A stretch of DNA of 64,000 nucleotides from sequence record NC_047995.1. The stretch is one strand, 5' to 3'. The translations under genes and the position numbers were made by a program. The number at the start of each line of letters is the position of its first letter. The first letter of the stretch is position 1. Positions 3,685-62,074 of this stretch are shown here, one piece after another. The notes below the pieces were generated by a model. That model had not been told where the DNA came from, made no database searches, and was given only the letters and a program-made list of their open reading frames with translations.

Positions 3685-4506
3685 TTAGTCTCCTACTGCC
3701 GTGTACCAGAAGTCCCAGCCGACAGTGTTAGTGCCGCTAGACTTAATGGTAAAGCCACCTAACAAGGCGTTCTCGTTCATCGCACTGGTGCCGTCCAAGT
3801 TATACAGCGTGAAAGTCTTGGACTGGTTCGTTGCTGCGTTCACAAACGTAATGTGAAGGCTGATACAACGGTTGATGAACGGGCTATTGAAGATAACGTG
3901 CAGCGTGTCAGTTGTCGATTTGTTCACGACTCGACCCATGTTGTGGGTGAAGCCTGTGTTCATATTTCGATTGCTACCAATCCACGCGTTCGCAATAGGT
4001 GCACCAGTTACTGGGTCGAGTGCTTGCGCTGTGCGATATTCATCAATCGCTGCGTCACGCCCTGGACTACCAGTAGGGCCAGTTGCTCCAGTAGGACCGA
4101 CTGAGCCTGTGTTACCTGTAGCACCTACAGGACCTGTGTTACCAGTAGGCCCATTACGACCACGGGGGCCGCGAGGACCGGGACAGCCATCAGTGCCGTC
4201 ACGACCATCGCGTCCGTTAGTACCAGAGAGACCGCGTAAGCCGTCTTTACCCTGTTTCCCTTCACGACCAGACTTGAGCTGATCAGCAGTAGGCAAACCA
4301 ATTACGTTTGACTGACTGCCGTCTGGCCAGATGATTGAAAGTGTACCTGTATTGGTATCGAACTGAGCACCCTGAGCACCTGGAATCTTCGCGGCTTCTT
4401 GCGGGTCAATGAACGCAACAGCCGTGGACGTCTTCTTACCCAGCACTTTACCTACAGGGTCTTTACCACCGTCGATAAGTGATGGGCTAATTCTTGTAAG
4501 AGACAT
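3685..4506 (-). CDS. Collagen-like fibre protein D (273 aa, 24 Gly-X-Y triplets)
   Basis: Uninterrupted GRE..GCP..GRD triplets, preceded by FDTNTGTL..GLPT; globular C-terminal domain. Confidence 0.85.
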   Translation of the reverse strand: MSLTRISPSLIDGGKDPVGKVLGKKTSTAVAFIDPQEAAKIPGAQGAQFDTNTGTLSIIWPDGSQSNVIGLPTADQLKSGREGKQGKDGLRGLSGTNGRDGRDGTDGCPGPRGPRGRNGPTGNTGPVGATGNTGSVGPTGATGPTGSPGRDAAIDEYRTAQALDPVTGAPIANAWIGSNRNMNTGFTHNMGRVVNKSTTDTLHVIFNSPFINRCISLHITFVNAATNQSKTFTLYNLDGTSAMNENALLGGFTIKSSGTNTVGWDFWYTAVGD

Positions 4507-4516
4507 GGGTGAACTC

Positions 4517-4720
4517 CTAACCAGTCAGTGTTGTCCAATCAGGTTGGCCCGATTGTCCGGCTTCGGGATTTTTGACTTTCGTGTTATTGATAGTCATACG
4601 AATCCAACGGACCGTTCCGTCCGTATCTTGCCACCGAACCTTCGTCCCACCGTATGCTAAATTAGCTACCCATCTGTCTCTGCTCGGGTCTTTGAATGCT
4701 AAACGTGCATATGCAGGCAT
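4517..4720 (-). CDS. Small virion protein resembling the N-terminus of 7648..9666 (67 aa)
   Basis: GGAG RBS, fills the gap exactly; RWIRMTINNTKVKNP resembles DWTPLTPEKFSVRNQ. Confidence 0.7.
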   Translation of the reverse strand: MPAYARLAFKDPSRDRWVANLAYGGTKVRWQDTDGTVRWIRMTINNTKVKNPEAGQSGQPDWTTLTG

Positions 4721-4729
4721 ACGCTCTCC

Positions 4730-7606
4730 TTATTCGATTTCACTCGGTTCCCAACATAGAATAGGACGGCGCCACACCTGGAACACACCGATAGGGTTCG
4801 AACGGAAGTCATCAATGTAAGCATCGAAAGTACGTCCGCCACTGTTGCCGCTAGCCATGAGTGTCTGCAAGTTAGACAGCCAAGAAGCACGTCCACCAGA
4901 GTCAGCTTCAAACAATCCTTCCCACACCATGTCGAATGCGCCGCGCCACGCGTTGAAGTGATGAGAAGAATATGCACCATCACCAACTGAACACAGCACC
5001 ATGTACTGGTAGTCTTTCACGCACGGAATCATGTAGTCATTCCCACGTGGGATAGCAGTGCCGTTATTGTTGAAGATACACTCCCAACCAGTACGGTCTG
5101 CGGCGCCTGTCGTCAAGAACAGGGGACGACGAATGATCATCATAATTCCGTTCGCCCAGCCGTCATTGCTTGACTTCTCGCAATACGCATTGCAGCGTAA
5201 CGCACGGTCAACGGTAAACGTGGTAGAGTTTGAGAAGTCACGGCTGTAGAAGTTCGAACCCCACTTAGGAAGATACTCTGCTGGTGGTACGAAGAAGTGA
5301 CGTTCAGCCAATTCAACTTCACCATAAGCATCATACGCAAACACGATGTACTCGAAGCCTGCTTCAATCTGAATGTTATGACCCTGTGAGCCATAGCCAC
5401 TCCACTTCCATACAACCTGCCAATCGTTTGTATCTCGCTCAGGCATTTCCGTGATGAGCTGATATGGGCGCTCGTACACATGCCACACTTTCCCTTCTTC
5501 TGTCGTGTTGATGTACAGAGAGTTAGGGTCATTGATGTTACCGTTAGACGTACCGCAGTAGACTTTGTGTGACGCACCAGCAGAGTTATAGATAGTCCCT
5601 GAGCCTATACCTGCGAACATATCCCAGTTCATCATCAGGTGCGATGTACACATTTCGTTCTGGCCTGCACCATCAGATGTTGAGAGCAGATACTCATTCA
5701 AGTCTTTGAACGCATAGCGAACGTAGTTACTGCCTGCACGGTTAACACGGTGAACCCAGTCGTGCGATTGAACTTTCGGCACAGGGAAGCATGGGTTAGT
5801 GACAGACACGACGAAGTTTTTAGTTTCATACATCGGCAGTTTCTTGAAGCGGTTATCACGAATCGTTACCGTGTGCTTCATGCCGTAGGTCTTACCGCCG
5901 TCCATACCGCCTAACACTTTGTAGTACGACTCATGCGCACTCTTGGTGTTGTCGAACAGTCCAGTGATGCCCATAGCAAGTGTGCCGTCACGATCTGTAC
6001 CTGTGCAGTAAGGCACGTTGCCTGAATCGAAGTCGAAGCCTACAGAGTAGTAGCTGTCAGGCGAACTTGATTTAGGGCCCCAGTAGAGTTCAGTGTAGGC
6101 AGAACCTTCACCGATACCTGGCTCACCGAATACGCAGTACGCAGCACGGTAGACATACTGGCTGCCCTGGAACACACGACGTGAAGCACCGATGCGATAC
6201 ATAGCAGCAGGCAGTCCGCCCTGCACACGGTTAACGTCCGCAGTATCATACGACACAACGAAGACGTAACAGTCGGTTCCAATCGAGTTGAGGAACGCAG
6301 CACATGCGGCAGCATTGGCAACACCTGGGTTAGTACCTTCGGCAGATGCGTGAATGTCAAACGCTCGGCGCTCAAGAAGTGCAAGATCAGACTTACGAAT
6401 CTTATAGACATTTAGGCCACGAGAGTCGTTGTACTGTACACCGTTATATATCGTGTAGCCGTGATCGCCTGTGTCAAGATAGCGCTGATAGCCAACGACA
6501 TGCGAGAACAGTCTGCTACGTGCCTGCAACGCTTGGCCATTCTGATTCGACCAACTGACAGACACATCACCAGCAGCAAGACGCGCTGCCCAGTCATCAG
6601 GCTTGTAGGGGAACGTGGTCACATCGAAGTTAACACCGTACGCCGAACCAGGTTCTACGCAGCATGGATTGCGATAAATAACAGGCGGGTCAACCACAAT
6701 ATCATCAGGGATATCGACCTGTCCGCAATACATCTGCTTCCATGTACCAGGCTGGCCACCTAGCGAAGAAGGTCCTGCAGGAGCTGCACCAGTGAACTGA
6801 TAGATAGCAGACAGACGATAGTTAATCTGGTTGTGCAGCTGAGGCACGTTCGTCCACGAAATGTGATTGCCGAACGAGTTAACGGCCTTAGCGCGAGCAG
6901 CAGAGGTAGAGACAACGTATGCCTGACCGTTACTGCGAATACCTAACGGGTTGAAGATGGCGTTGAAGTTCACGTTCCCTTCATACGCGTTCTTTTGAAT
7001 CACGATAAGACTGACGCCGTTGCGATGCGCTTCACGTAAAGCCGTGAGCATCTGCGTAGGCATACTTTGGTTCGTCGCAGACAGCAGCAGCATTACGCAA
7101 CTAAACTGTTTGAAGTAGCGGTAGTCACCATTGTAGCCGTATGCACCTGCGTTAATCTCCTGCCAGCTATGTGCGAACATGTCCAGAGGCATGCGCTGCA
7201 TATAACCGACAAGCTGTCCCCACGACTCCATCGCACTATCATCATTGACAGGAGCAAGGTCGGAGATGACAAGCATCGAACTGCCGTTCGTAATGTTTGC
7301 GTTATAGCCCCGCTGAGTCAGGAAGTGACGCAACGCACCCATGTTGTTAACGCTCTTATTGCGGAAGTTCCCTAACCAGCCATAGTTAGCATCGACGAGA
7401 GGGCTACCCTCACGAACGAAACGACCATTCATGTAGATAGCGCCAAAGCCACACACGTAAGCGAGAGAGTGGCCATCTACAACAAACGAGGTGAAGCGTG
7501 ACGCATCGACTGCCATAGCATCGACAGCAGACTCGGAACCATTGCCAGGGCTACCGCTGAACACAGGAGTAATGCCTCGTGCGTACAGGCAACTTTGTTG
7601 CAGCAT
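4730..7606 (-). CDS. Large multidomain fibre/adhesin protein with an ILEI/PANDER-like domain (958 aa)
   Basis: RGLNVYKI..FDIH..AAFLNSIG..VFVVSYD..RIGAS..YRAAYCVFGEPGIGEG follows the ILEI pattern; three C-terminal repeats. Confidence 0.7.
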   Translation of the reverse strand: MLQQSCLYARGITPVFSGSPGNGSESAVDAMAVDASRFTSFVVDGHSLAYVCGFGAIYMNGRFVREGSPLVDANYGWLGNFRNKSVNNMGALRHFLTQRGYNANITNGSSMLVISDLAPVNDDSAMESWGQLVGYMQRMPLDMFAHSWQEINAGAYGYNGDYRYFKQFSCVMLLLSATNQSMPTQMLTALREAHRNGVSLIVIQKNAYEGNVNFNAIFNPLGIRSNGQAYVVSTSAARAKAVNSFGNHISWTNVPQLHNQINYRLSAIYQFTGAAPAGPSSLGGQPGTWKQMYCGQVDIPDDIVVDPPVIYRNPCCVEPGSAYGVNFDVTTFPYKPDDWAARLAAGDVSVSWSNQNGQALQARSRLFSHVVGYQRYLDTGDHGYTIYNGVQYNDSRGLNVYKIRKSDLALLERRAFDIHASAEGTNPGVANAAACAAFLNSIGTDCYVFVVSYDTADVNRVQGGLPAAMYRIGASRRVFQGSQYVYRAAYCVFGEPGIGEGSAYTELYWGPKSSSPDSYYSVGFDFDSGNVPYCTGTDRDGTLAMGITGLFDNTKSAHESYYKVLGGMDGGKTYGMKHTVTIRDNRFKKLPMYETKNFVVSVTNPCFPVPKVQSHDWVHRVNRAGSNYVRYAFKDLNEYLLSTSDGAGQNEMCTSHLMMNWDMFAGIGSGTIYNSAGASHKVYCGTSNGNINDPNSLYINTTEEGKVWHVYERPYQLITEMPERDTNDWQVVWKWSGYGSQGHNIQIEAGFEYIVFAYDAYGEVELAERHFFVPPAEYLPKWGSNFYSRDFSNSTTFTVDRALRCNAYCEKSSNDGWANGIMMIIRRPLFLTTGAADRTGWECIFNNNGTAIPRGNDYMIPCVKDYQYMVLCSVGDGAYSSHHFNAWRGAFDMVWEGLFEADSGGRASWLSNLQTLMASGNSGGRTFDAYIDDFRSNPIGVFQVWRRPILCWEPSEIE

Positions 7607-10809: not shown

Positions 10810-12251
10810 TACTTTTTCTCCGCTTTTGCAACGATATCCGTGTTATGCACAAGCACATCTCCGACGAAGTAGCAGTCGAATGGGTCAACGTCAATATCGA
10901 CCGTCTGCACATTATCGTCAACGCGGCGCATCTCGTAGACAGAGACAGGACCGTTGCGGCCTAGAACAGTTTGACCAGCTTGTACATCACGCGCAGGAAC
11001 ATAGCGCCACGCAGTATCGTCGTAAATCAAAACAGGGTGTTCGTGCGTGAACTTCTGTCCGTTGATAACATAGAAGTGGTCCTCTTGACCGCGAACCAAC
11101 GCTTTAACAGTTGCGTACACAGTTGTGCCTTTGAGGCTAGGCGAAGACCAACGTCTGAACTCTTTAGGCTGATTCGAATAGCCAAGAATAGCATCGCCAA
11201 CGCGAAGTTCTTCTACAGTCTTCGGACCAACGAGAGTCTCAACAACGGAACCAAACACGATACAGCCAGATGTTGCAGTGTTGACAGGGTTACGCGCAAC
11301 GACAGTCAACGCAGAACGCGCTGTAGCTGTAGGACGCGATGTTTGTCCCATGTCAGTTACGACGCAGGTGATGGTGCCTTTGATAATACGATCAGCACCA
11401 AGACCAAGCCGCAGGTAGAAGTTAACAATGCAGGTGTTTGTCTCTGTAGCTTCGAGAGTTACACCTTCTGTGGTAGTGACTGTCCATTTATACTTATATG
11501 GACCGACACCGCCACGCGCATTGACAGGTAGATATGCCAGTGACGTAAACACATCAGAGCCTTGCACTGTACGTTGACCTACCAGGTACAGACTCGACAC
11601 TGACGCAGCAAGAGGTGATATTGTAGGAAGCGGTGGTGCTGGCGTAACGTTCGTCGTAGGGTATAACCACACGAACACTTTACTATCCAGAGGTTGAACA
11701 GACGATAGCACTGCTGTAGTGATTGGCGCTGGGCCGGTTGCACCCGTAGCACCTGCGATACAGCTTGGACCGTCATTGCCCCGCGGGCCGATTGGACCTG
11801 TAGGGCCTGTATTACCGTCAGGGCCTGTAGGACCATCGGGTCCCATACGACCCGTATCGCCGTCAGGACCATCTTCGCCGTCTCGGCCAGGGTCTCCGAC
11901 AGGACCTGTCTTACCTCTGTTACCCACACCGCCAGGACAACCAACGCGACCAGTTTCTCCATCACGACCGTTTCGCCCGTCACGACCAGGAGAGCCTGGA
12001 GCGCCTCGACGCCCAGACTTACCTTCACCGAACATGGAAACAGTCGGAAGCCCAGGGACGTTTAGCACCTCCCCGTTCTTCTTGATGAAAACCAATACAC
12101 CTGTCTTGCTGTTAAATCTTACGCTGGCGAGCTGTGTCAGTGTTGCCACATCAGAGGCTTCGAATTTAACACCTCCGTCAACTCCGACTAAGGATTTACC
12201 TTCATCGTTCTGCGTTGTTTCGACTTGCGAAAGTTTTAACAGTGTTGTCAT
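10809..12251 (-). CDS. Collagen-like fibre protein A with a C-terminal Hint (intein-like) domain (480 aa)
   Basis: 29 Gly-X-Y triplets, an interruption, then 3 more; a beta-rich domain; then a Hint domain. Confidence 0.85.
10842..11264 (-). other. Hint autoprocessing domain (141 aa, no endonuclease)
   Basis: Block A CIVFGSVV (Cys1), block B THEHP (TxxH), block [14 protein letters not shown], terminal VHN followed by Thr+1. Confidence 0.85.
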
Positions 12252-14587
12252 TTCGGTTCAACCTTAATGCACAAGTTACCAGTCAGCTTCGAACCGTAGC
12301 TAGTGATCTGCGAATCGGTGATACGCACCTTAGCAACGATATCAATGAAGCCTTGTGGTTGGTTCTCTTTCAGCACCGTGAACATCTGCGTCAGGCTTAC
12401 GTTAGAGTACGCAATTACTTCTGTCAGACTAGCATCGGAAGTAACAACGTTGAACCCTGCGCTGCCTGTGCCTTTCAGTCCACGCCCGTATTCAGCTTCT
12501 GCTGTACCCGGCATCTTGAACGAGAGCACGTACTCGATGTGTTCCTTACCGCTGGTGGCCGCGAAGCCTGGACCCAGTTGACACTGGAAGTCAGCGATAC
12601 AGGTCAGCATCACACCCTTAGAGAAGTCTATACGTTGAACGATGGTCAGTTCTTCCGAATCTGTGACATTCTGTTGGATGTTGTACATGTTCTTCGGGTC
12701 AGCTTCTTCGGCGAGTGCCTGTGTGTTGCTGATCGTAATCTCAGGCCAAGTGCCTTTAATCACAATACCTTCACCCTGAATGATAGCAGGAGCAGCAATA
12801 GGCACGTCAATCGGAGGCAGACCTTGACGCTTGAACATGTAACCTGTTGGCGTAGGGATAGCGTCGATGATAACACCATCAACTGAACTATCTTTTGAGC
12901 CGACTGCCATGACGTTCTCGAAGATGGTTACTTCAATGAGTGTGTCTGCAGGAATAGGCGACGTTGTTTTTAACGAGTTACCAGCCACTGTGAAGTCAAG
13001 CGGGTGTACAGTCAGACCGCCCATCGCCATAACGCAGTGCGCTTTATTTAGTGGCGTAGTAGGCAGAATAAATGTATCAGCATCATAAGGCAGGCGATAC
13101 TGAGCAACACGAATACGAGTAGACCAGTTGGCTCGTTCTTCATAGCGGGCCACATAGAATGAATACTTCTGACCAGATGGAATTGCTTCGGTCAGCGTTA
13201 CCTTGTTACCTGCATTCAGCTTATAGACCGTAGTAGGCTGCCAAGTTGAACCGACGACGCAGAAGATCATGTCCACGCTATCAATCGGTTTGCTGCCTAA
13301 GCTGAACGTTGCTGTCTGTCCATCGCCAGTGCCTTCGTAGACTTCAAACAACACAACGTGGCCTTGAGAAGGCTCAACGCGGAACTGCCTGAGGTCAAGC
13401 GATAGACGCTGTTCAGGGAACGACGAGAGCAGGAGCTGATCATCCACAACGCTGTATGCAGTACGAGGCTGCAAGACACCAGACGTGCCGACTAACAGAT
13501 CAGTCGAGCTATCAAGAATCTCGGACAGCGCATAGCGCATCTTATCAGGCGTCGCAGTTGTCACGACAGAACTAAACAGCATCTTGCCCGGAGGCACGAA
13601 CAACGAGGCTGTAGTCTGGCGCGCTGAGCCGCCAACAGGTGCCCAGTAAGGCTTAGCGTCTTTGCCTCGCATCAGCGCCCATGTATCAGGCACATCGTTC
13701 TGATCGGGCCAAGGCAGACCAGCAGTCGGAGTCGTCGGGTTAGTGATTCGACGCCATACTGCAATCGTAGTCTGCGCTGAGATGAACGGGATAGGTCCAT
13801 CTTGGTTGACAAGTTGACCGCCAACGAATTTGAAGTGACGACACGCACCAGCGCCAGTACCAGCAATCGTCTGAATCAGCACAACCTCATTCGCTTTCAA
13901 CGTACCCGCGAGGCTGGCGATCTTAAACGTGTTGGCGTTGATGAATCCAGCAGTCGTAATCTGGCCGCTGAACAAACGGTCATGCTCGCTGAATGCCCAG
14001 TAATATGAGCCAGCGCCATAACGATACGCAACGCCAGGAGACTTGGAACCATCAGAGTTAACGTGCATATCAAGAACCGATACGGCGTTGAACACGTTGT
14101 CTTTCAGGCTCGGTAAGTTCTCAAGCGTAGCCACACTCGGGATAGAGGTGTAGTCTGCCATTTTAACAGCAAGAATCTTTTGAATGTCCTGCTGGATATG
14201 TACGAGCAAGCTCACGCGATTGATAGAGTTCGGTACAGCGATGATAGGCTCTTCAAGGACAACGTGACCGAAAGGTCTGTTATCAGAGAGCATGATCAAC
14301 AGCTCACCCACACGCTTCATCTGTTCGCCAGCGACGTAGTTGATTTTGATATCGAATACAAATCGGGCACTGTTCTCGGTAAGTACCTGAACGTATGACA
14401 GGGCGCCCGACGCAAGCTCGTTGCCAAGTAACTGCTCTGGAACCACTGATGGGTTTGAGCCTACAAAGTCACCTGCTTTAAACGACACTGGTTGAACTGC
14501 AAGTCCACCAGAGTTAGCGTTCGCAACGGCCTGTTCTCCCTGAGGCGTTAGACGCAATGCGTCAACGTAGATAGATTCAGTGGCCAT
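12248..14587 (-). CDS. Tail-collar/fibre-attachment baseplate protein (about 779 aa)
   Basis: N-terminus LRLTPQGEQAVANA..FKAGD..VGEL resembles phage tail-collar fibre N-terminal domains; ATG at 14587 with AAGGAG RBS. Confidence 0.6.
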   Translation of the reverse strand: MATESIYVDALRLTPQGEQAVANANSGGLAVQPVSFKAGDFVGSNPSVVPEQLLGNELASGALSYVQVLTENSARFVFDIKINYVAGEQMKRVGELLIMLSDNRPFGHVVLEEPIIAVPNSINRVSLLVHIQQDIQKILAVKMADYTSIPSVATLENLPSLKDNVFNAVSVLDMHVNSDGSKSPGVAYRYGAGSYYWAFSEHDRLFSGQITTAGFINANTFKIASLAGTLKANEVVLIQTIAGTGAGACRHFKFVGGQLVNQDGPIPFISAQTTIAVWRRITNPTTPTAGLPWPDQNDVPDTWALMRGKDAKPYWAPVGGSARQTTASLFVPPGKMLFSSVVTTATPDKMRYALSEILDSSTDLLVGTSGVLQPRTAYSVVDDQLLLSSFPEQRLSLDLRQFRVEPSQGHVVLFEVYEGTGDGQTATFSLGSKPIDSVDMIFCVVGSTWQPTTVYKLNAGNKVTLTEAIPSGQKYSFYVARYEERANWSTRIRVAQYRLPYDADTFILPTTPLNKAHCVMAMGGLTVHPLDFTVAGNSLKTTSPIPADTLIEVTIFENVMAVGSKDSSVDGVIIDAIPTPTGYMFKRQGLPPIDVPIAAPAIIQGEGIVIKGTWPEITISNTQALAEEADPKNMYNIQQNVTDSEELTIVQRIDFSKGVMLTCIADFQCQLGPGFAATSGKEHIEYVLSFKMPGTAEAEYGRGLKGTGSAGFNVVTSDASLTEVIAYSNVSLTQMFTVLKENQPQGFIDIVAKVRITDSQITSYGSKLTGNLCIKVEPK

Positions 14588-14616
14588 CAAAGAACTCCTT
14601 GGGTTTTAACTGTTCT

Positions 14617-14624
14617 AAATTAGC
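14617..14624 (-). promoter_or_regulatory. Putative late promoter GCTAATTT
   Basis: Just downstream of a terminator, 30 nt before the ATG at 14587. Confidence 0.65.
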
Positions 14625-21092: not shown

Positions 21093-21382
21093 TAGCCAAA
21101 TCTCACGTTAGAACTACCGTTAGATGCAGTGTCTCCGCAACTGTTACCATCACCCGCACGTTGGGCCGGTTTACCGTTGACACGCACACTCGAACTGGAA
21201 GTAGCTTTGCCTACGTGCGGTGGCTTCTTTGGCTTCCAGTGTGGCATATATGAGTCACCCTGTCTCACGCTTCCCTTACCGTTGATCATCACGTTAGCAG
21301 ACGCTTGCGCGGCGACAACAGGAAAGTAACCGCTATGGCCTGTAGATTGGTCTGCTCCTAGGCGAATAGCTTTCTGTCCCAT
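21092..21382 (-). CDS. PAAR-repeat spike-tip protein (gp5.4-like, 96 aa)
   Basis: AIRLGAD..GH, VMINGKGSVRQGD, VRVNGKPAQRAGD..CG..GSSNV. Confidence 0.9.
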   Translation of the reverse strand: MGQKAIRLGADQSTGHSGYFPVVAAQASANVMINGKGSVRQGDSYMPHWKPKKPPHVGKATSSSSVRVNGKPAQRAGDGNSCGDTASNGSSNVRFG

Positions 21383-21405
21383 GATTATTCTCCTCTGTTA
21401 GACAC

Positions 21406-21413
21406 AAATTAGC
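21406..21413 (-). promoter_or_regulatory. Putative late promoter GCTAATTT
   Basis: Between a terminator and the PAAR gene, 24 nt before its ATG. Confidence 0.65.
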
Positions 21414-21431
21414 TTGTTACGAGACAGAAAC

Positions 21432-21457
21432 AAAAACGGGCAGCCTAATGGCCACCC
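21432..21457 (-). terminator. Intrinsic terminator closing the long non-coding region
   Basis: GGGTGGCC-ATTA-GGCTGCCC followed by GTTTTT on the minus strand. Confidence 0.8.
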
Positions 21458-21493
21458 AGTTTCTGTACGCTTGGATTTTGTGTCGTCATTCCC

Positions 21494-21652
21494 TTACGCC
21501 CGATGCAAGTGCCTATCAGCTTTCGCTGTTAAGCCGGAATGAGTGTTCGAGAGTGAAGGTACACCTGGTACCGACAGAAGGTGACTCTCGGACCATGCAA
21601 GCAATAGACCAAGCATCGCTATTGCAAGCATCGACACTAAGAACAAAAGCAT
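21494..21652 (-). CDS. Putative 52-aa hydrophobic small protein inside the candidate RNA
   Basis: AAGGAG 7 nt before ATG; MLLFLVSMLAIAMLGLLLAW (20 hydrophobic residues), then a polar tail ending ..RHLHRA*. Confidence 0.45.
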   Translation of the reverse strand: MLLFLVSMLAIAMLGLLLAWSESHLLSVPGVPSLSNTHSGLTAKADRHLHRA

Positions 21653-21711
21653 GTTTCGCTCCTTGTGTCATACTTTAAAGGACTACGTTTGATCGACGGT
21701 TACTTTATTCT

Positions 21712-21740
21712 GCTCGTCGCCTAAACTCCACTTGAGTATC
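21712..21740 (-). repeat. Copy 2 of the motif GATACTCAAGTG-N6/7-GGCGACGAGC
   Basis: 22 identical nt shared with 22106-22133; enclosed by an ATTCTG/CAGAAT stem. Confidence 0.85.
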
Positions 21741-22105
21741 AGAATGTTTCTCTGTCTTTACCGCCTACGTTGCGGCAAGCCGCGCACGACACTCACACAT
21801 CAAGGACACTCGGCGGAAGGAGGAAGTTCCGATTGCCCTAACAGCGTAAGTGAAGCGAAGGAGGTCCCGTATCGGTGATCTGCAGGGGTTCACGCACTTT
21901 TAACATTCGCTTCTTTGTGCGTTAAACCTTCGTGGACCCGAATGCCCTGCTAATCATTCCACGAAGATATTGCACACCCTATTGTGAACGAGGGGGTCGA
22001 GCTATGGCATCACGTCAACAGCAGTGGACGGCGGACACACTCCATTGCAATCTGTTAAGGGCAGAATGCAACAGGCTGTGAACAGCTTTGGCCAAATGTA
22101 GAGTC

Positions 22106-22133
22106 GCTCGTCGCCCAACATCACTTGAGTATC
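22106..22133 (-). repeat. Copy 1 of the motif GATACTCAAGTG-N6/7-GGCGACGAGC
   Basis: 22 identical nt shared with 21712-21740; enclosed by an AATGTAGA/TCTACATT stem. Confidence 0.85.
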
Positions 22134-22725
22134 TCGTCTACATTCGTTTACTCCCTGAAAGCATCACTAGGCAGCTTACCTGTGATACCCATGAGGACCT
22201 GCGGATGTTTATCACTCTCAGACTCTTAGTTCCCTGCATGTGAAAACAACACGTTGAGTCGTCCGCTGGATGACGTGCTGTTTATTCTCAATCCGCTTAG
22301 GCAGCGAAAGGCACATATCAGATAATGATGGAACTGTCATGAAGGAATCCCTGGAGGTCATCGCTTCCCAATGCACACAGGGTGAAAGCCTATGCACATC
22401 AGGCAGCGTCTGCTGCGATACTGCTATCCCTATTAGACTGCCCACAGCGTTGAGTTTTCCGCTCCAACAGTCTACGTGCCTGGAAGGTATATGCCGTGCC
22501 AAGTATGTATCAGCATGGTTCCTGCTGGGCCTTGAGAGCGTCAGCGACAGAGCATATATTCATCACGTGGGTGCCGGGGTTGTCCTCACGATTACAGAGC
22601 GCAAACTCAAACCGGCTGGAGGCCTACACAAACCGCATGTAGGTTTCACATCAAGAGAAGCCCGCTATGAGTCCTCTCCCTTGAGACATATTGATATTAC
22701 TATCTGCAATTTTTATTTACAGATT

Positions 22726-24486
22726 TTAGAAGGCTTTTCGTTCCACATTCGAATAATAAGTTTCGTATGGGTCAGAGTACAGCTCAGGACCACGCTGCGC
22801 ACGAATCGTCACGTAACCAGTGTGTCGGTTGAATGCGATGATTTCGACAGTAGGCTGCTTAGGCTTGATGGTCGAATAGATTGGTGCGTCCATTGTCGGT
22901 TCGTCTGTCTGAATCTTATTTACAGATTTCAGAGCATCACCAGACAGCGTAGGCAGATTAAATCTGATCTCAGCGCGTTTCGTACCAAAGGCAATCTTGA
23001 TAACGCCTGCAGGCAGTTCGACACCGTTCTGCTTCATGTACGCGCCGATACGACGAGCAACGCCAGTCAACTGGTCACGAGTACGTGGGTCGAATGTACC
23101 TTCGAAGCTGATTGCTTCTGCTGGCTGACGCACCGACATGTGCAGGCCTGTGTTGAAATAACCTTCGGCCAGAAGTCGCGTCACTTCCTTCACGATTTCT
23201 TTCGTGTTGGATTTGATAGCCGCAATCTTCAACTCAGGCACGTCAACCTTAACAGGGTCACGCATCTCAGTCTGGTTGTCCATGTAACCGAGGGATACGT
23301 GTTTCGCTTTGGTGTACGTGTGCTGGAGCACGCCAGTAGCACGAATCATGACAGAGCCAGACTTCGCTTGGTCGTACAGTTCATCGCTGGTGGTTGTGCT
23401 GAACAGGTAGTAGTCCGTAGGCACAGCCATGCGACCAACCGCTTCAACTGCTTTCGTCTGTACTTCTTTTACAGTCTTGCCGAAGACAACACGACTGCGA
23501 TTCGGCTGGGAAGCAGACACAGGGAAGAATGCGCCGTAAACAACCTGCACGTTCTTTTGAATCGGCTTGGAAGAGTTTACCTTGATGCCACCTTGCAGCG
23601 GAGGTAACTTAACGCCCACCAGCTTACCGCTGACGATAGCCTTGTTAGCGACAACAGGCTTGAGTGCACCAATCAGCTTCTGCACCTCAGCGCCGTCCAG
23701 AATCTTCTCCAGCGGAACAGCGAGGTTCTGCGGCAGATAGTGTTTCTTACGGAACGAGTAGATAACAGTGTCTTTCTTGATCTGCAACGGCGTAGCCATG
23801 TTGCGACCAATCTGACCTACAGGCTGGAAGGTGTTCTTCTTATCGTCAGCGATAGAGCCGAATGCTTTCGTGAACTCTGTCTGGCCGATGATGTTAGCAA
23901 CACGCTGGTGGCCACGAACGATGAAGATAATCTTCGGTTCGTCTTTCAGGCGCAGTTCGTAGCGGTCACGGTTCAAATAAACCATGCTGTACTTGTCGCC
24001 TTTCTCCAACACAAGGTCGTACTCGTCGTTGGCGTCATCGACAATAACTTTCTTACCTTGATAGGTTGCATATTGTCGGGCAGCAGAAGTAGAAGCAATC
24101 TCCAGCGCCTTGCCTGTGTTAGACAATGCAACAGCAAAGTCAGTCACGGCAGGCATCAGGTCAACAGAGGATGCAACCGCATAGCTGTTACGACGTTCAC
24201 CGAGATGCAAATGCACGGCAGATGATGCAGACATGAATACAGTGTTACCTGTGTCTTCATGTTTACCTGCAAAGTTCATGCCGCTAATGCGTTCGATGAT
24301 GTTCGCACTTAGAGCAGGAAACGCGATATCGTCACCAGCAGCGAAGTCAAAGATTTCGCCATGACGCCATGCGTATGCGACGTTGTTGGAGCTAAGTCCG
24401 ATAAACGCATCGCCGATCTGTTTAACAGTCATCGGCATAATACTCAGATCACGAATGACCGAGTTTTGCTTTTGAATAAGATTCAT
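22726..24486 (-). CDS. Hypothetical, probable internal head protein carrying the dispersed paralogous domain (586 aa)
   Basis: YATYQGKK..LEKGDKYSM..RYEL..DEPKIIFIV resembles domains in 37018, 45593 and 52904. Confidence 0.6.
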   Translation of the reverse strand: MNLIQKQNSVIRDLSIMPMTVKQIGDAFIGLSSNNVAYAWRHGEIFDFAAGDDIAFPALSANIIERISGMNFAGKHEDTGNTVFMSASSAVHLHLGERRNSYAVASSVDLMPAVTDFAVALSNTGKALEIASTSAARQYATYQGKKVIVDDANDEYDLVLEKGDKYSMVYLNRDRYELRLKDEPKIIFIVRGHQRVANIIGQTEFTKAFGSIADDKKNTFQPVGQIGRNMATPLQIKKDTVIYSFRKKHYLPQNLAVPLEKILDGAEVQKLIGALKPVVANKAIVSGKLVGVKLPPLQGGIKVNSSKPIQKNVQVVYGAFFPVSASQPNRSRVVFGKTVKEVQTKAVEAVGRMAVPTDYYLFSTTTSDELYDQAKSGSVMIRATGVLQHTYTKAKHVSLGYMDNQTEMRDPVKVDVPELKIAAIKSNTKEIVKEVTRLLAEGYFNTGLHMSVRQPAEAISFEGTFDPRTRDQLTGVARRIGAYMKQNGVELPAGVIKIAFGTKRAEIRFNLPTLSGDALKSVNKIQTDEPTMDAPIYSTIKPKQPTVEIIAFNRHTGYVTIRAQRGPELYSDPYETYYSNVERKAF

Positions 24487-39989: not shown

Positions 39990-39997
39990 AAATTAGC
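39990..39997 (-). promoter_or_regulatory. Putative late promoter GCTAATTT
   Basis: Intergenic, 43 nt before the sheath ATG. Confidence 0.6.
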
Positions 39998-54815: not shown

Positions 54816-54823
54816 AAATTAGC
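54816..54823 (-). promoter_or_regulatory. Putative late promoter GCTAATTT
   Basis: Just downstream of a terminator, 35 nt before ATG 54781. Confidence 0.65.
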
Positions 54824-61288: not shown

Positions 61289-62074
61289 TCACTCCATTAC
61301 CAGATAGGTTACAGTGAGTTTCGGTTTCGACGGCGACGTTCCGATATTCCTCATACGCCATGCAATCGCAGGCGTGTTGTCCTTGTTGGACAGGAAGCTA
61401 TATCGGCGCAGCTTGCGTATAACAGGATTACCCTCGCTATCCACATCTGAAAACACGCCATCATCTTCAAGAAAATTAGCAGTGGAGCGGAATAAATACG
61501 GGTTTCTGTCATCTCGTTGCGCAGTAGGGAACGCAGAGAGTTCAATGTCAAAGGCATTGAGCTTGACCGAAAGCAGCATCACCGTCTTGTTCATCTGCAA
61601 GTCAAAATCAACCTGCTGACCAGGGGTAATGTACGCAGGAGATTCATACTCCACAGTCTTACGCACACCAGCACTTTCATTACCACTAAGGTCTGCCCAG
61701 AACATCGTACCGTTAGCACCAGATACGAGGGTCATACCCGCATATTCAGGCTCAGGCACTTGTTTGCTTGGGTCGAGGCCTACAACAGTCAAACCTGTTT
61801 CATCCACAGCAGTAACGAAAGGCGATTCAAACTTATAGTTCGAACCACCGAATTTCGCTTCTTCCCACGTCACGTTGTCAGCACCAAGTTGATACATCTT
61901 CTTGGTCTCGGTGACGTAACACAACATCCCAGGCTTTTTATTACCTACGGACATTGTGTCACGTTCCGTCATTGTGGCTACGCAACGCATACCTCCACGA
62001 AGATATTTATCCTCGAGGAGGTATGGAAGTGCTGCGGATGCTGGCAACAGGAACGAAGTCATGTATACCGGCAT
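61289..62074 (-). CDS. Fibre-associated protein (261 aa)
   Basis: N-terminal LRGGMRCVATMTERD..KKPGMLCYV.ETKKMYQL, a motif I associate with phage fibre proteins. Confidence 0.6.
   Translation of the reverse strand: MPVYMTSFLLPASAALPYLLEDKYLRGGMRCVATMTERDTMSVGNKKPGMLCYVTETKKMYQLGADNVTWEEAKFGGSNYKFESPFVTAVDETGLTVVGLDPSKQVPEPEYAGMTLVSGANGTMFWADLSGNESAGVRKTVEYESPAYITPGQQVDFDLQMNKTVMLLSVKLNAFDIELSAFPTAQRDDRNPYLFRSTANFLEDDGVFSDVDSEGNPVIRKLRRYSFLSNKDNTPAIAWRMRNIGTSPSKPKLTVTYLVME

Follow-up and report, generated by a model that had tools for sequence, protein, structure and literature searches.

Compensatory covariation points to a kilobase-scale RNA of an apparently new class at the border of the baseplate operon in Erwinia jumbo phage vB_EamM_Alexandra

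To our knowledge, very large structured RNAs whose function is unknown are few in bacteria and phages. Each of them has changed ideas about what RNA can do, and GOLLD, ROOL, and OLE have recently been shown to form RNA-only assemblies. For GOLLD and ROOL, the cryo-electron microscopy report describes multimers built of RNA only (PMC12286853), and for OLE a kink turn is reported to be needed for protein binding (PMC9723947). Here we describe a further large RNA, encoded in a window of 64,000 nucleotides (nt) from record NC_047995.1 (the whole stretch analyzed, called the window below), which is 100% identical to Erwinia phage vB_EamM_Alexandra, a jumbo phage of 266.5 kb in the genus Alexandravirus. 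The RNA lies in a gene-free gap of 1343 nt (22725-21383, minus strand; positions 83383-84725 of the Alexandra record, where no annotation is given) between the stop of a gene for a protein of 586 amino acids (aa) (22726) and the start of the gene for the PAAR spike-tip protein (21382). Comparison of homologous sequences shows that the minus strand of this gap, which is the strand of every surrounding gene, specifies a modular, multi-domain fold that is under purifying selection at the RNA level. In size, it would rank among the largest structured RNAs of bacteria or phages that are still unexplained.

Similar to GOLLD and ROOL, this RNA is large, phage-associated, and rich in helices, has invariant junctions, and was first recognized by covariation. 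In contrast to them, it gives no covariance-model match, its body is longer (~1.0 kb, or ~1.26 kb with the module that contains a small open reading frame, ORF), it does not lie beside tRNA genes, it has the small ORF attached, and it is confined to one clade of jumbo phages of Erwinia, Dickeya, and Yersinia. OLE is likewise a large structured RNA encoded beside a membrane-protein gene; its partners are OapA and others, and the neighbor here is the small hydrophobic ORF. However, no Rfam match links the two, the hosts of OLE are Gram-positive extremophiles whereas these are phages of Enterobacterales, and the peptide is a single-span candidate of ~50 residues unrelated to the Oap proteins. A partnership of this peptide with the RNA would be an analogy.

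The evidence for the fold comes from an alignment of 19 distinct homologous sequences with 53-100% pairwise identity, which was analyzed with RNAalifold and three controls. On the gene strand, the gap gave a consensus energy of -623 and 369 pairs, 95% compatible, and double changes were seen in 170 of these pairs (75 with at least 95% compatibility). The opposite strand reached -516 with 357 pairs (91% compatible; 151 with double changes, 45 at the same compatibility level). The values fell to about -300 with 283-292 pairs in three column shuffles (89-90% compatible; 52-69 and 8-12), and to -386 with 341 pairs in a coding control of equal length from the 586-aa gene of the same 19 phages (91% compatible; 46 and 4). 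Compensatory changes, the general mark of a structured RNA, were thus above those of phylogeny-aware controls, and the covariation check on syntenic relatives that a preliminary description of the window, made from the sequence alone, had suggested came out in favor of the RNA. Two sub-domain models gave similar results. In model R1 (g149-300, where g is the gap position counted from the 5' end on the minus strand and the window coordinate equals 22726 - g), 96.9% of the cells were paired compared with 31-42% when the partners were slid, and 24 of 41 pairs had double changes compared with 2-8. In model R3 (g1131-1240) the corresponding values were 97.1% against 37-51%, and 18 of 28 pairs against 4-8. 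For R1 none of 500 shuffles reached any observed measure, and the count for R3 was also 0 of 500. The R1 model matched loci outside its training (L030, L056, L058, and L059) with E values from 3e-11 to 1.5e-25. In L059, which was not used in model building, 90.8% of 347 consensus pairs were formed, with 50 double changes relative to the window; in the equally untrained L056 (60% identity, placed by fixed-length alignment) the proportion was 73.5%. A search for pseudoknots returned only weak candidates for extra covarying stacks, with two double changes each.

The strands differed in the non-canonical pairs that they tolerate. The ratio of G-U to A-C combinations was 924/76 on the gene strand and 441/283 on the opposite strand, compared with 660-777/139-179 in the column shuffles and 889/161 in the coding control. 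This asymmetry indicates that the minus strand is the functional RNA strand, and it rules out a purely DNA-level element. No other non-coding stretch of the window is as long as the gap, and plasmids are known to have structured primer RNAs, points that would suit a replication origin, a packaging site, or a replication primer RNA. Such an element is nevertheless very improbable, because tolerance of G-U and avoidance of A-C on one strand only reflects selection on RNA and not on duplex DNA. In addition, the gap is not AT-rich, as the preliminary description had observed (G+C content 0.49, similar to the flanking DNA), G-C skew and gene orientation are unchanged across the region, and no iteron-type repeats occur beyond the two copies of a module described below.

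Ten of the 11 helices proposed in the preliminary description are part of the covariation-supported consensus, and the signal for its dense minus-strand helices is far above chance. They include CCTACAT/GTGTAGG, AGACTG/CAGTCT with its inner helix, AATGTAGA/TCTACATT, TTGCA-TCTG/CAGA-TGCAA, CTTCGTGGA/TCCACGAAG, GCAATAG/CTATTGC, CGAGAGT/ACTCTCG, TCATTCC/GGAATGA, and CAGC-GAAA-GCTG, and the hairpin it placed at the 5' end recurs in every phage with differing sequence. The pairing TTGCCGC/GCGGTAA was probably a mis-assignment, since covariation prefers a short GCGG/CCGC hairpin together with a longer-range covarying helix. The wider proposal of a large minus-strand phage RNA of unrecognized class is supported by the compensatory covariation, the G-U/A-C asymmetry, and the lack of matches in Rfam, ARAGORN, and protein-family searches.

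The gap is conserved without coding for a long protein. It was found with a length of 1.09-1.47 kb in 46 GenBank phage records and in uncultured relatives. In 15 phages that represent three genera, all six frames contain 8-32 stops each, and no long open stretch is common to all. Compared with pEa_SNUABM_35, the gap is 86.2% identical with mismatches of 56/68/55 over the three phases, whereas the 586-aa gene is 85.7% identical with mismatches of 46/17/189 by codon position; in the comparison with Y3, the gap reaches 59.9% identity and the gene 67.7%. Because the mismatch phases are flat at gene-like identity, the gap must evolve much more slowly than synonymous sites and without a codon signature. 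A protein gene or pseudogene was considered for the 1.0-kb body and rejected, as there was no shared frame, no third-position bias, and no family match. A broken gene was rejected as well, since the open pieces of the gap, searched separately, matched no Pfam or PHROG family. On the plus strand, a frame of 445 codons (22270-23607) runs antisense to the 586-aa gene and extends into the RNA region; relatives do not retain this frame, family searches with its part within the gap found no match, and it is most likely spurious.

Searches for described RNAs gave a similar picture. With Rfam 15 at the gathering score there was no match in the whole window, the families covered including group I and II introns, ribonuclease P (RNase P), transfer-messenger RNA (tmRNA), 6S, GOLLD, ROOL, OLE, HEARO, and raiA. 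Under permissive settings, one chance-level match was obtained at E up to 10 in 21200-22900 and one at E up to 5 in seven homologous loci, and ARAGORN found no tRNA or tmRNA gene in the window. These results bear out the preliminary description, which had seen no tmRNA, RNase P, or group I or II intron core. The blastn search against E. coli genomes and plasmids returned no match, indicating that the RNA is not derived from ribosomal RNA or host sequence. By its size, the element could be a gene or an intron. Even so, it is scarcely credible that it is a decayed protein gene or a missed member of a known family (group I or II intron, RNase P, tmRNA, GOLLD, ROOL, OLE, or HEARO), given the closed frames in all relatives, the non-periodic substitutions, and the empty family searches. 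An intron is also contradicted by the flanking genes, because both are intact in all phages and leave no exons to join. Literature searches found no description of this RNA. It appears to be a new class within a general kind, the large ornate phage RNAs, that already exists.

The 3' part of the gap has a double character. The preliminary description had read the last 160 nt as helices only, but they also hold a conserved small ORF (Table 1). Its frame is open in all 19 sequences (47-52 codons): in the same columns it has no stop, and the two alternative frames have 69 and 28. The length differences are multiples of three in 18 of the 19. The ORF recurs in three more metagenomic relatives and, with 53 aa in Yoloswag, 64 aa in SNUABM_5, and 43 aa in JA13 and JA29, in distant genera; it is annotated in some GenBank records. 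Among the 20 N-terminal codons, the second position is the least variable (0.16/0.08/0.20). The C-terminal half shows no codon pattern (0.19/0.22/0.21), yet its RNA helices covary, the stop codon lies inside a covarying helix, and three further covarying hairpins are found within the ORF, one of them in a three-way junction. The peptide has no Pfam or PHROG match, and tblastn returned matches from the same locus only. The open frame, the threefold indels, the ribosome-binding site, and the hydrophobic segment are those of a small membrane-protein gene. We read this as a real gene of that type, whose mRNA would itself be a conserved structure.

RNAIII and the hok-type mRNAs also combine a structured transcript with a short hydrophobic peptide and a ribosome-binding site in a hairpin. 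A dual-function or toxin-like transcript would have the hydrophobic peptide as its main product (holin-like, exclusion, or type I toxin-like), and the RNA would stabilize and silence the transcript. The conservation of the small hydrophobic ORF across six genera is consistent with this, as is the structured 3' module that travels with it in distant genera. However, RNAIII and hok-type RNAs are 0.2-0.5 kb long. Related genera show that most of the structure here can be separated from the ORF, and the 1-kb upstream body would be left unexplained. The lack of a codon-position pattern in a C-terminal half whose helices covary also argues against the peptide as the main product. Searches for features of type I toxin-antitoxin systems found no toxin-family match, and the promoter scan no convincing antisense promoter; no antisense partner was found. 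We consider a dual-function or toxin-like transcript unlikely.

With the 586-aa gene as its marker, the locus can be recognized in six genera and numerous metagenomic contigs, and the element occurs there in diverged forms. Alexandravirus, Sasquatchvirus, and Snuvirus carry the long form, as do uncultured lineages whose marker protein is as little as 60% identical. A short form is seen in Yoloswagvirus, Rivsvirus, and Salmondvirus, in which the same 5' box precedes 0.55-1.0 kb of stop-rich sequence; this shares only short blocks with the long form, chiefly the twice-repeated module. The order in the Yoloswag type is the short form, several small genes, the small-ORF module, the same terminator, and the operon start, so that the module is separated from the 5' RNA by several genes. 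The R3 covariance model matches the small-ORF module in SNUABM_5 (E 7.5e-7) and Yoloswag (8.9e-5), and the R1 model detected nothing in the distant genera. For the five distinct sequences of the short form, the alifold energy was -120 compared with -28 to -35 in shuffles, with 34 double-change pairs (20 with at least 95% compatibility) compared with 16-21 (5-11); this is supportive of a structure in the short form, but thin. At 47% marker-protein identity, the locus L064 has a gene-free gap of 1341 nt (4377-5717) that starts with the same box and contains two different small hydrophobic ORFs. No nhmmer match was obtained between this gap and the long-form profile, and the gap may represent a third form of the element. 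One carrier of the 586-aa gene, the RNA, and PAAR is a contig of 34.7 kb labeled as a metagenome-assembled genome of Raoultibacter sp. (L050, JAVWLC010000001.1), which looks like a phage contig binned with a bacterium.

We propose that the gap would form a self-contained transcription unit on the minus strand, consisting of the 5' box, the ~1.0-kb RNA, a linker, the small ORF within further structured RNA, and a terminator. Transcription would start at the 5' box, and the RNA body would be co-transcribed with the small ORF. The body would then act through its folded shape as a stand-alone, trans-acting RNA or ribonucleoprotein, with the role of a scaffold or a catalytic core, and the adjacent small membrane protein might be its partner. 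That the body of such a unit is a free RNA or ribonucleoprotein, and not merely a leader, has in our view about an even chance of being correct.

Several observations weigh against this proposal. The transcript of the unit, its ends, and its fold are predictions from sequence comparison, and it is only by analogy that the small protein is considered a partner. The neighboring 586-aa protein offers no functional clue by sequence or predicted fold, and covariation support is weaker for the diverged short form, with its five distinct sequences. The single-sequence folding energy was no better than that of shuffles (z -0.22 for the sense and -0.42 for the antisense strand), an outcome that the preliminary description had itself named as refuting. 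Thermodynamic z-scores are known to be weak or uninformative for large RNAs, and because the covariation evidence is direct and outweighs them, we do not take this outcome as a refutation; the case rests on covariation, since the folding energy of the single sequence equals that of shuffles. Finally, the window has no terminator that would separate the RNA body from the small ORF, a conserved hairpin encloses both the ribosome-binding site and the start codon of the ORF, and same-strand ORFs follow the RNA in every genus.

These last features, together with the shared strand of body and ORF, would also fit a giant cis-acting leader. The mRNA for the small membrane protein (in Yoloswag-type phages, that for the small genes after the fold) would then have the 1-kb fold as its 5' untranslated region, and the fold would time or gate translation, for instance through opening of the hairpin in which the ribosome-binding site is hidden. 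We regard a leader as rather unlikely and favor a free RNA, because in Yoloswag-type phages the small-ORF module stands separately with its own box, the ORF of Yoloswag beginning ~30 nt after its box copy and far from the RNA. Moreover, nothing known for leaders equals the number of helices (more than 25 covarying), the invariant junctions, and the duplicated module, which go far beyond the needs of a leader, and whole domains can be lost without change to the small-ORF module.

Such a loss is seen in mg050/L050 (5259-6352) and L060 (4759-5870), which are without an internal block of ~250 nt (~g390-635) and keep the rest; their gaps measure 1094 and 1112 nt, respectively, compared with 1343 nt in the window. 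The natural loss of an internal block is typical of a modular RNA with peripheral domains, as the predicted fold would be. Many of its junctions and internal loops are invariant. Of the two hairpins at the 5' end, P2 has double changes in 8 of its 9 pairs, and the middle one of the three successive hairpins has 13 pairs that are 98% compatible, 8 of them with double changes. The module of ~30 nt occurs in exactly two copies, both in the gap (Table 1) and none elsewhere in the 64 kb, and it is present in distant genera too, where its inner part is an ordinary Watson-Crick helix. The short closing helix of copy 2 covaries. In the module model R2, RNAalifold retains 4 pairs, which makes the model in effect a sequence profile. 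The module is superficially kink-turn-like, a resemblance that we take to be a lead only. The conserved apical loop of P1 (22661-22665) is complementary to a conserved segment at 22201-22205, ~460 nt downstream (90% compatible, one double change), and the two are a candidate long-range tertiary contact. Pyrimidine-rich stretches of the CCUCC type at ~21858-21864 and 22617-22622 on the minus strand are conserved and apparently unpaired, although Y3 lacks the first. Ribosome-binding sites, that of the small ORF among them, could be pairing partners for these stretches.

At the 5' end of the unit, 31 of the first 50 gap positions are invariant in 15 phages of three genera. The 5' box (g1-33) is nearly identical at every position across genera. 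Each genome has it a single time, with a second copy in Yoloswag that lies ~30 nt upstream of the small ORF. In Yoloswag and SNUABM_5, the 586-aa gene is followed by a terminator-like hairpin and then by the box core, which is found in JA13 and JA29 as well. These positions suggest that the box may serve as a promoter. It differs in kind from the octamer GCTAATTT, which has seven sites in the window, all on the minus strand, compared with 1.3 expected, a number that none of 100 shuffles reached. Six of the seven are intergenic, and two (before the PAAR gene and before gene 12248-14590) come just after a terminator-like hairpin. This octamer is probably a promoter of the structural (late?) genes of the phage group. 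A sigma-70 promoter scan of the minus strand showed nothing convincing, and the phage group is reported to encode sigma-like factors of its own (PMC7412058).

The preliminary description had also noted that the element ends in a strong terminator, and this terminator is conserved in relatives, with a constant stem and a variable loop, and is still recognizable in JA13 and JA29. Because the terminator is followed by the promoter-like motif of the baseplate operon, the RNA unit is closed off from that operon, which appears to have its own promoter. The element had been described as embedded in the baseplate gene cluster, but it is the upstream border of the baseplate operon, not part of its interior. 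Downstream lie genes for the PAAR spike-tip protein, a gp25-like protein, and a gp6-like baseplate wedge protein; upstream are those for thymidylate kinase, a 144-aa protein, and the 586-aa protein. The large gap that had been reported at 21458-22685 is real and lies where it was placed. That it is the only one, with all others below 100 nt, holds nearly: it is the largest, and a second gap of 223 nt (4507-4729), upstream of gene 3685-4506, contains one GCTAATTT site.

The 586-aa protein (22726-24486, minus strand) is always encoded directly upstream of the RNA, and a KMPT-N domain is its sole recognizable part. It has no sequence match in the PDB, and its AlphaFold model, of medium confidence (predicted local distance difference test, pLDDT, 74.8), has no PDB fold match at E <= 0.001. 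The 144-aa neighbor has no PDB match either. In several relatives, further small ORFs flank the unit that are absent in the window (Table 1). One is a tiny glycine-rich ORF between the 586-aa gene and the 5' box, and another, with a lysine/proline-rich end, lies between the RNA terminator and the PAAR gene; ORFs similar to the latter occur in distant genera.

Table 1. Features of the predicted RNA unit and its surroundings. Positions are those of the window unless a locus is named; g, gap position.
Feature	Position	Strand	Remarks
5' box	22693..22725 (g1-33)	-	adjoins the stop codon of the 586-aa gene; putative promoter dedicated to the unit, or signal for 5' processing
Structured RNA body, ~1.0 kb	21695..22692	-	predicted by RNAalifold from 19 sequences with nulls: two 5' hairpins, large multi-branch domain, three more domains, and intervening hairpins
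5' hairpins P1 and P2	22623..22686 (P1 22686-22646; P2 22643-22623)	-	form in 19/19 phages despite differing stem sequences
Domain 1, large multi-branch	22201..22622 (g104-525)	-	sub-domain 22577-22426 modeled as R1
Domain 2	22090..22199 (g527-636)	-	carries module copy 1 (22096-22144)
Three hairpins in succession	22009..22086 (g640-717)	-	covariation consensus
Domain 3	21884..21979 (g747-842)	-	covariation consensus
Domain 4	21695..21880 (g846-1031)	-	module copy 2 (21702-21751); conserved pyrimidine-rich internal loop at ~21858-21864
Linker	21670..21694 (g1032-1056)	-	poorly conserved; consensus without helix
Hairpin around small-ORF AGGAG (Shine-Dalgarno-like) and start codon	21633..21669	-	covariation consensus
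Small ORF	21494..21652	-	52 codons including stop position; N-terminal ~19 residues hydrophobic, membrane-helix-like
Structured 3' module over C-terminal half of small ORF	21486..21595	-	long hairpin and three-way junction; R3 model
Intrinsic terminator closing the unit	21427..21458	-	9-pair stem at 21458-21437, then T-run
Promoter-like motif GCTAATTT before PAAR/baseplate operon	21406..21413	-	between RNA terminator and PAAR gene; neighbor, outside the unit
All GCTAATTT sites	1465-1472, 4659-4666, 14617-14624, 21406-21413, 39990-39997, 54816-54823, 61473-61480	-	octamer
Tiny glycine-rich ORF, ~10-25 codons	L003 2425-2500, L005 2425-2500, L056 5271-5310, L059 4765-4800		between 586-aa gene and 5' box
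ORF of ~40 codons	L006 3828-3956, L007 3826-3954, L009 3823-3945, L033 ~3820-3945		between RNA terminator and PAAR gene
Similar ORFs of ~40 codons in distant genera	L051 7286-7414, L052 7589-7714		

The position of the RNA recalls the packaging RNA of phage phi29, a folded part of a virion-assembly machine; the likeness is the location beside baseplate genes, and the two are compared by description only, the phi29 RNA being ~0.17 kb long with a known role as a multimeric ring. As a tentative idea, more probably wrong than right, the RNA might be a phage-encoded machine of more than 1 kb, ribozyme-like or self-assembling as RNA or ribonucleoprotein, perhaps tethered to the membrane by the co-encoded peptide of ~50 residues, and acting in jumbo-phage infection or in virion (baseplate) assembly. 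If this were true, it would be the largest class of structured RNA known from bacteria or their viruses outside ribosomal RNAs and introns. The covariation is dense, with ~170 compensated pairs from only about ten lineages. The RNA is carried by cultured, sequenced phages of a laboratory-tractable, plant-associated host, and natural variants exist: the form minus one domain, which would be useful as a domain-deletion form for structure work, and the short form of other genera. Because of these phages and variants, the transcript, its structure, and its partners should be directly describable. For the phage group, our analysis defines a conserved small ORF and two promoter-like motifs, and it indicates that the annotation of jumbo phages overlooks functional RNA on the scale of a kilobase.

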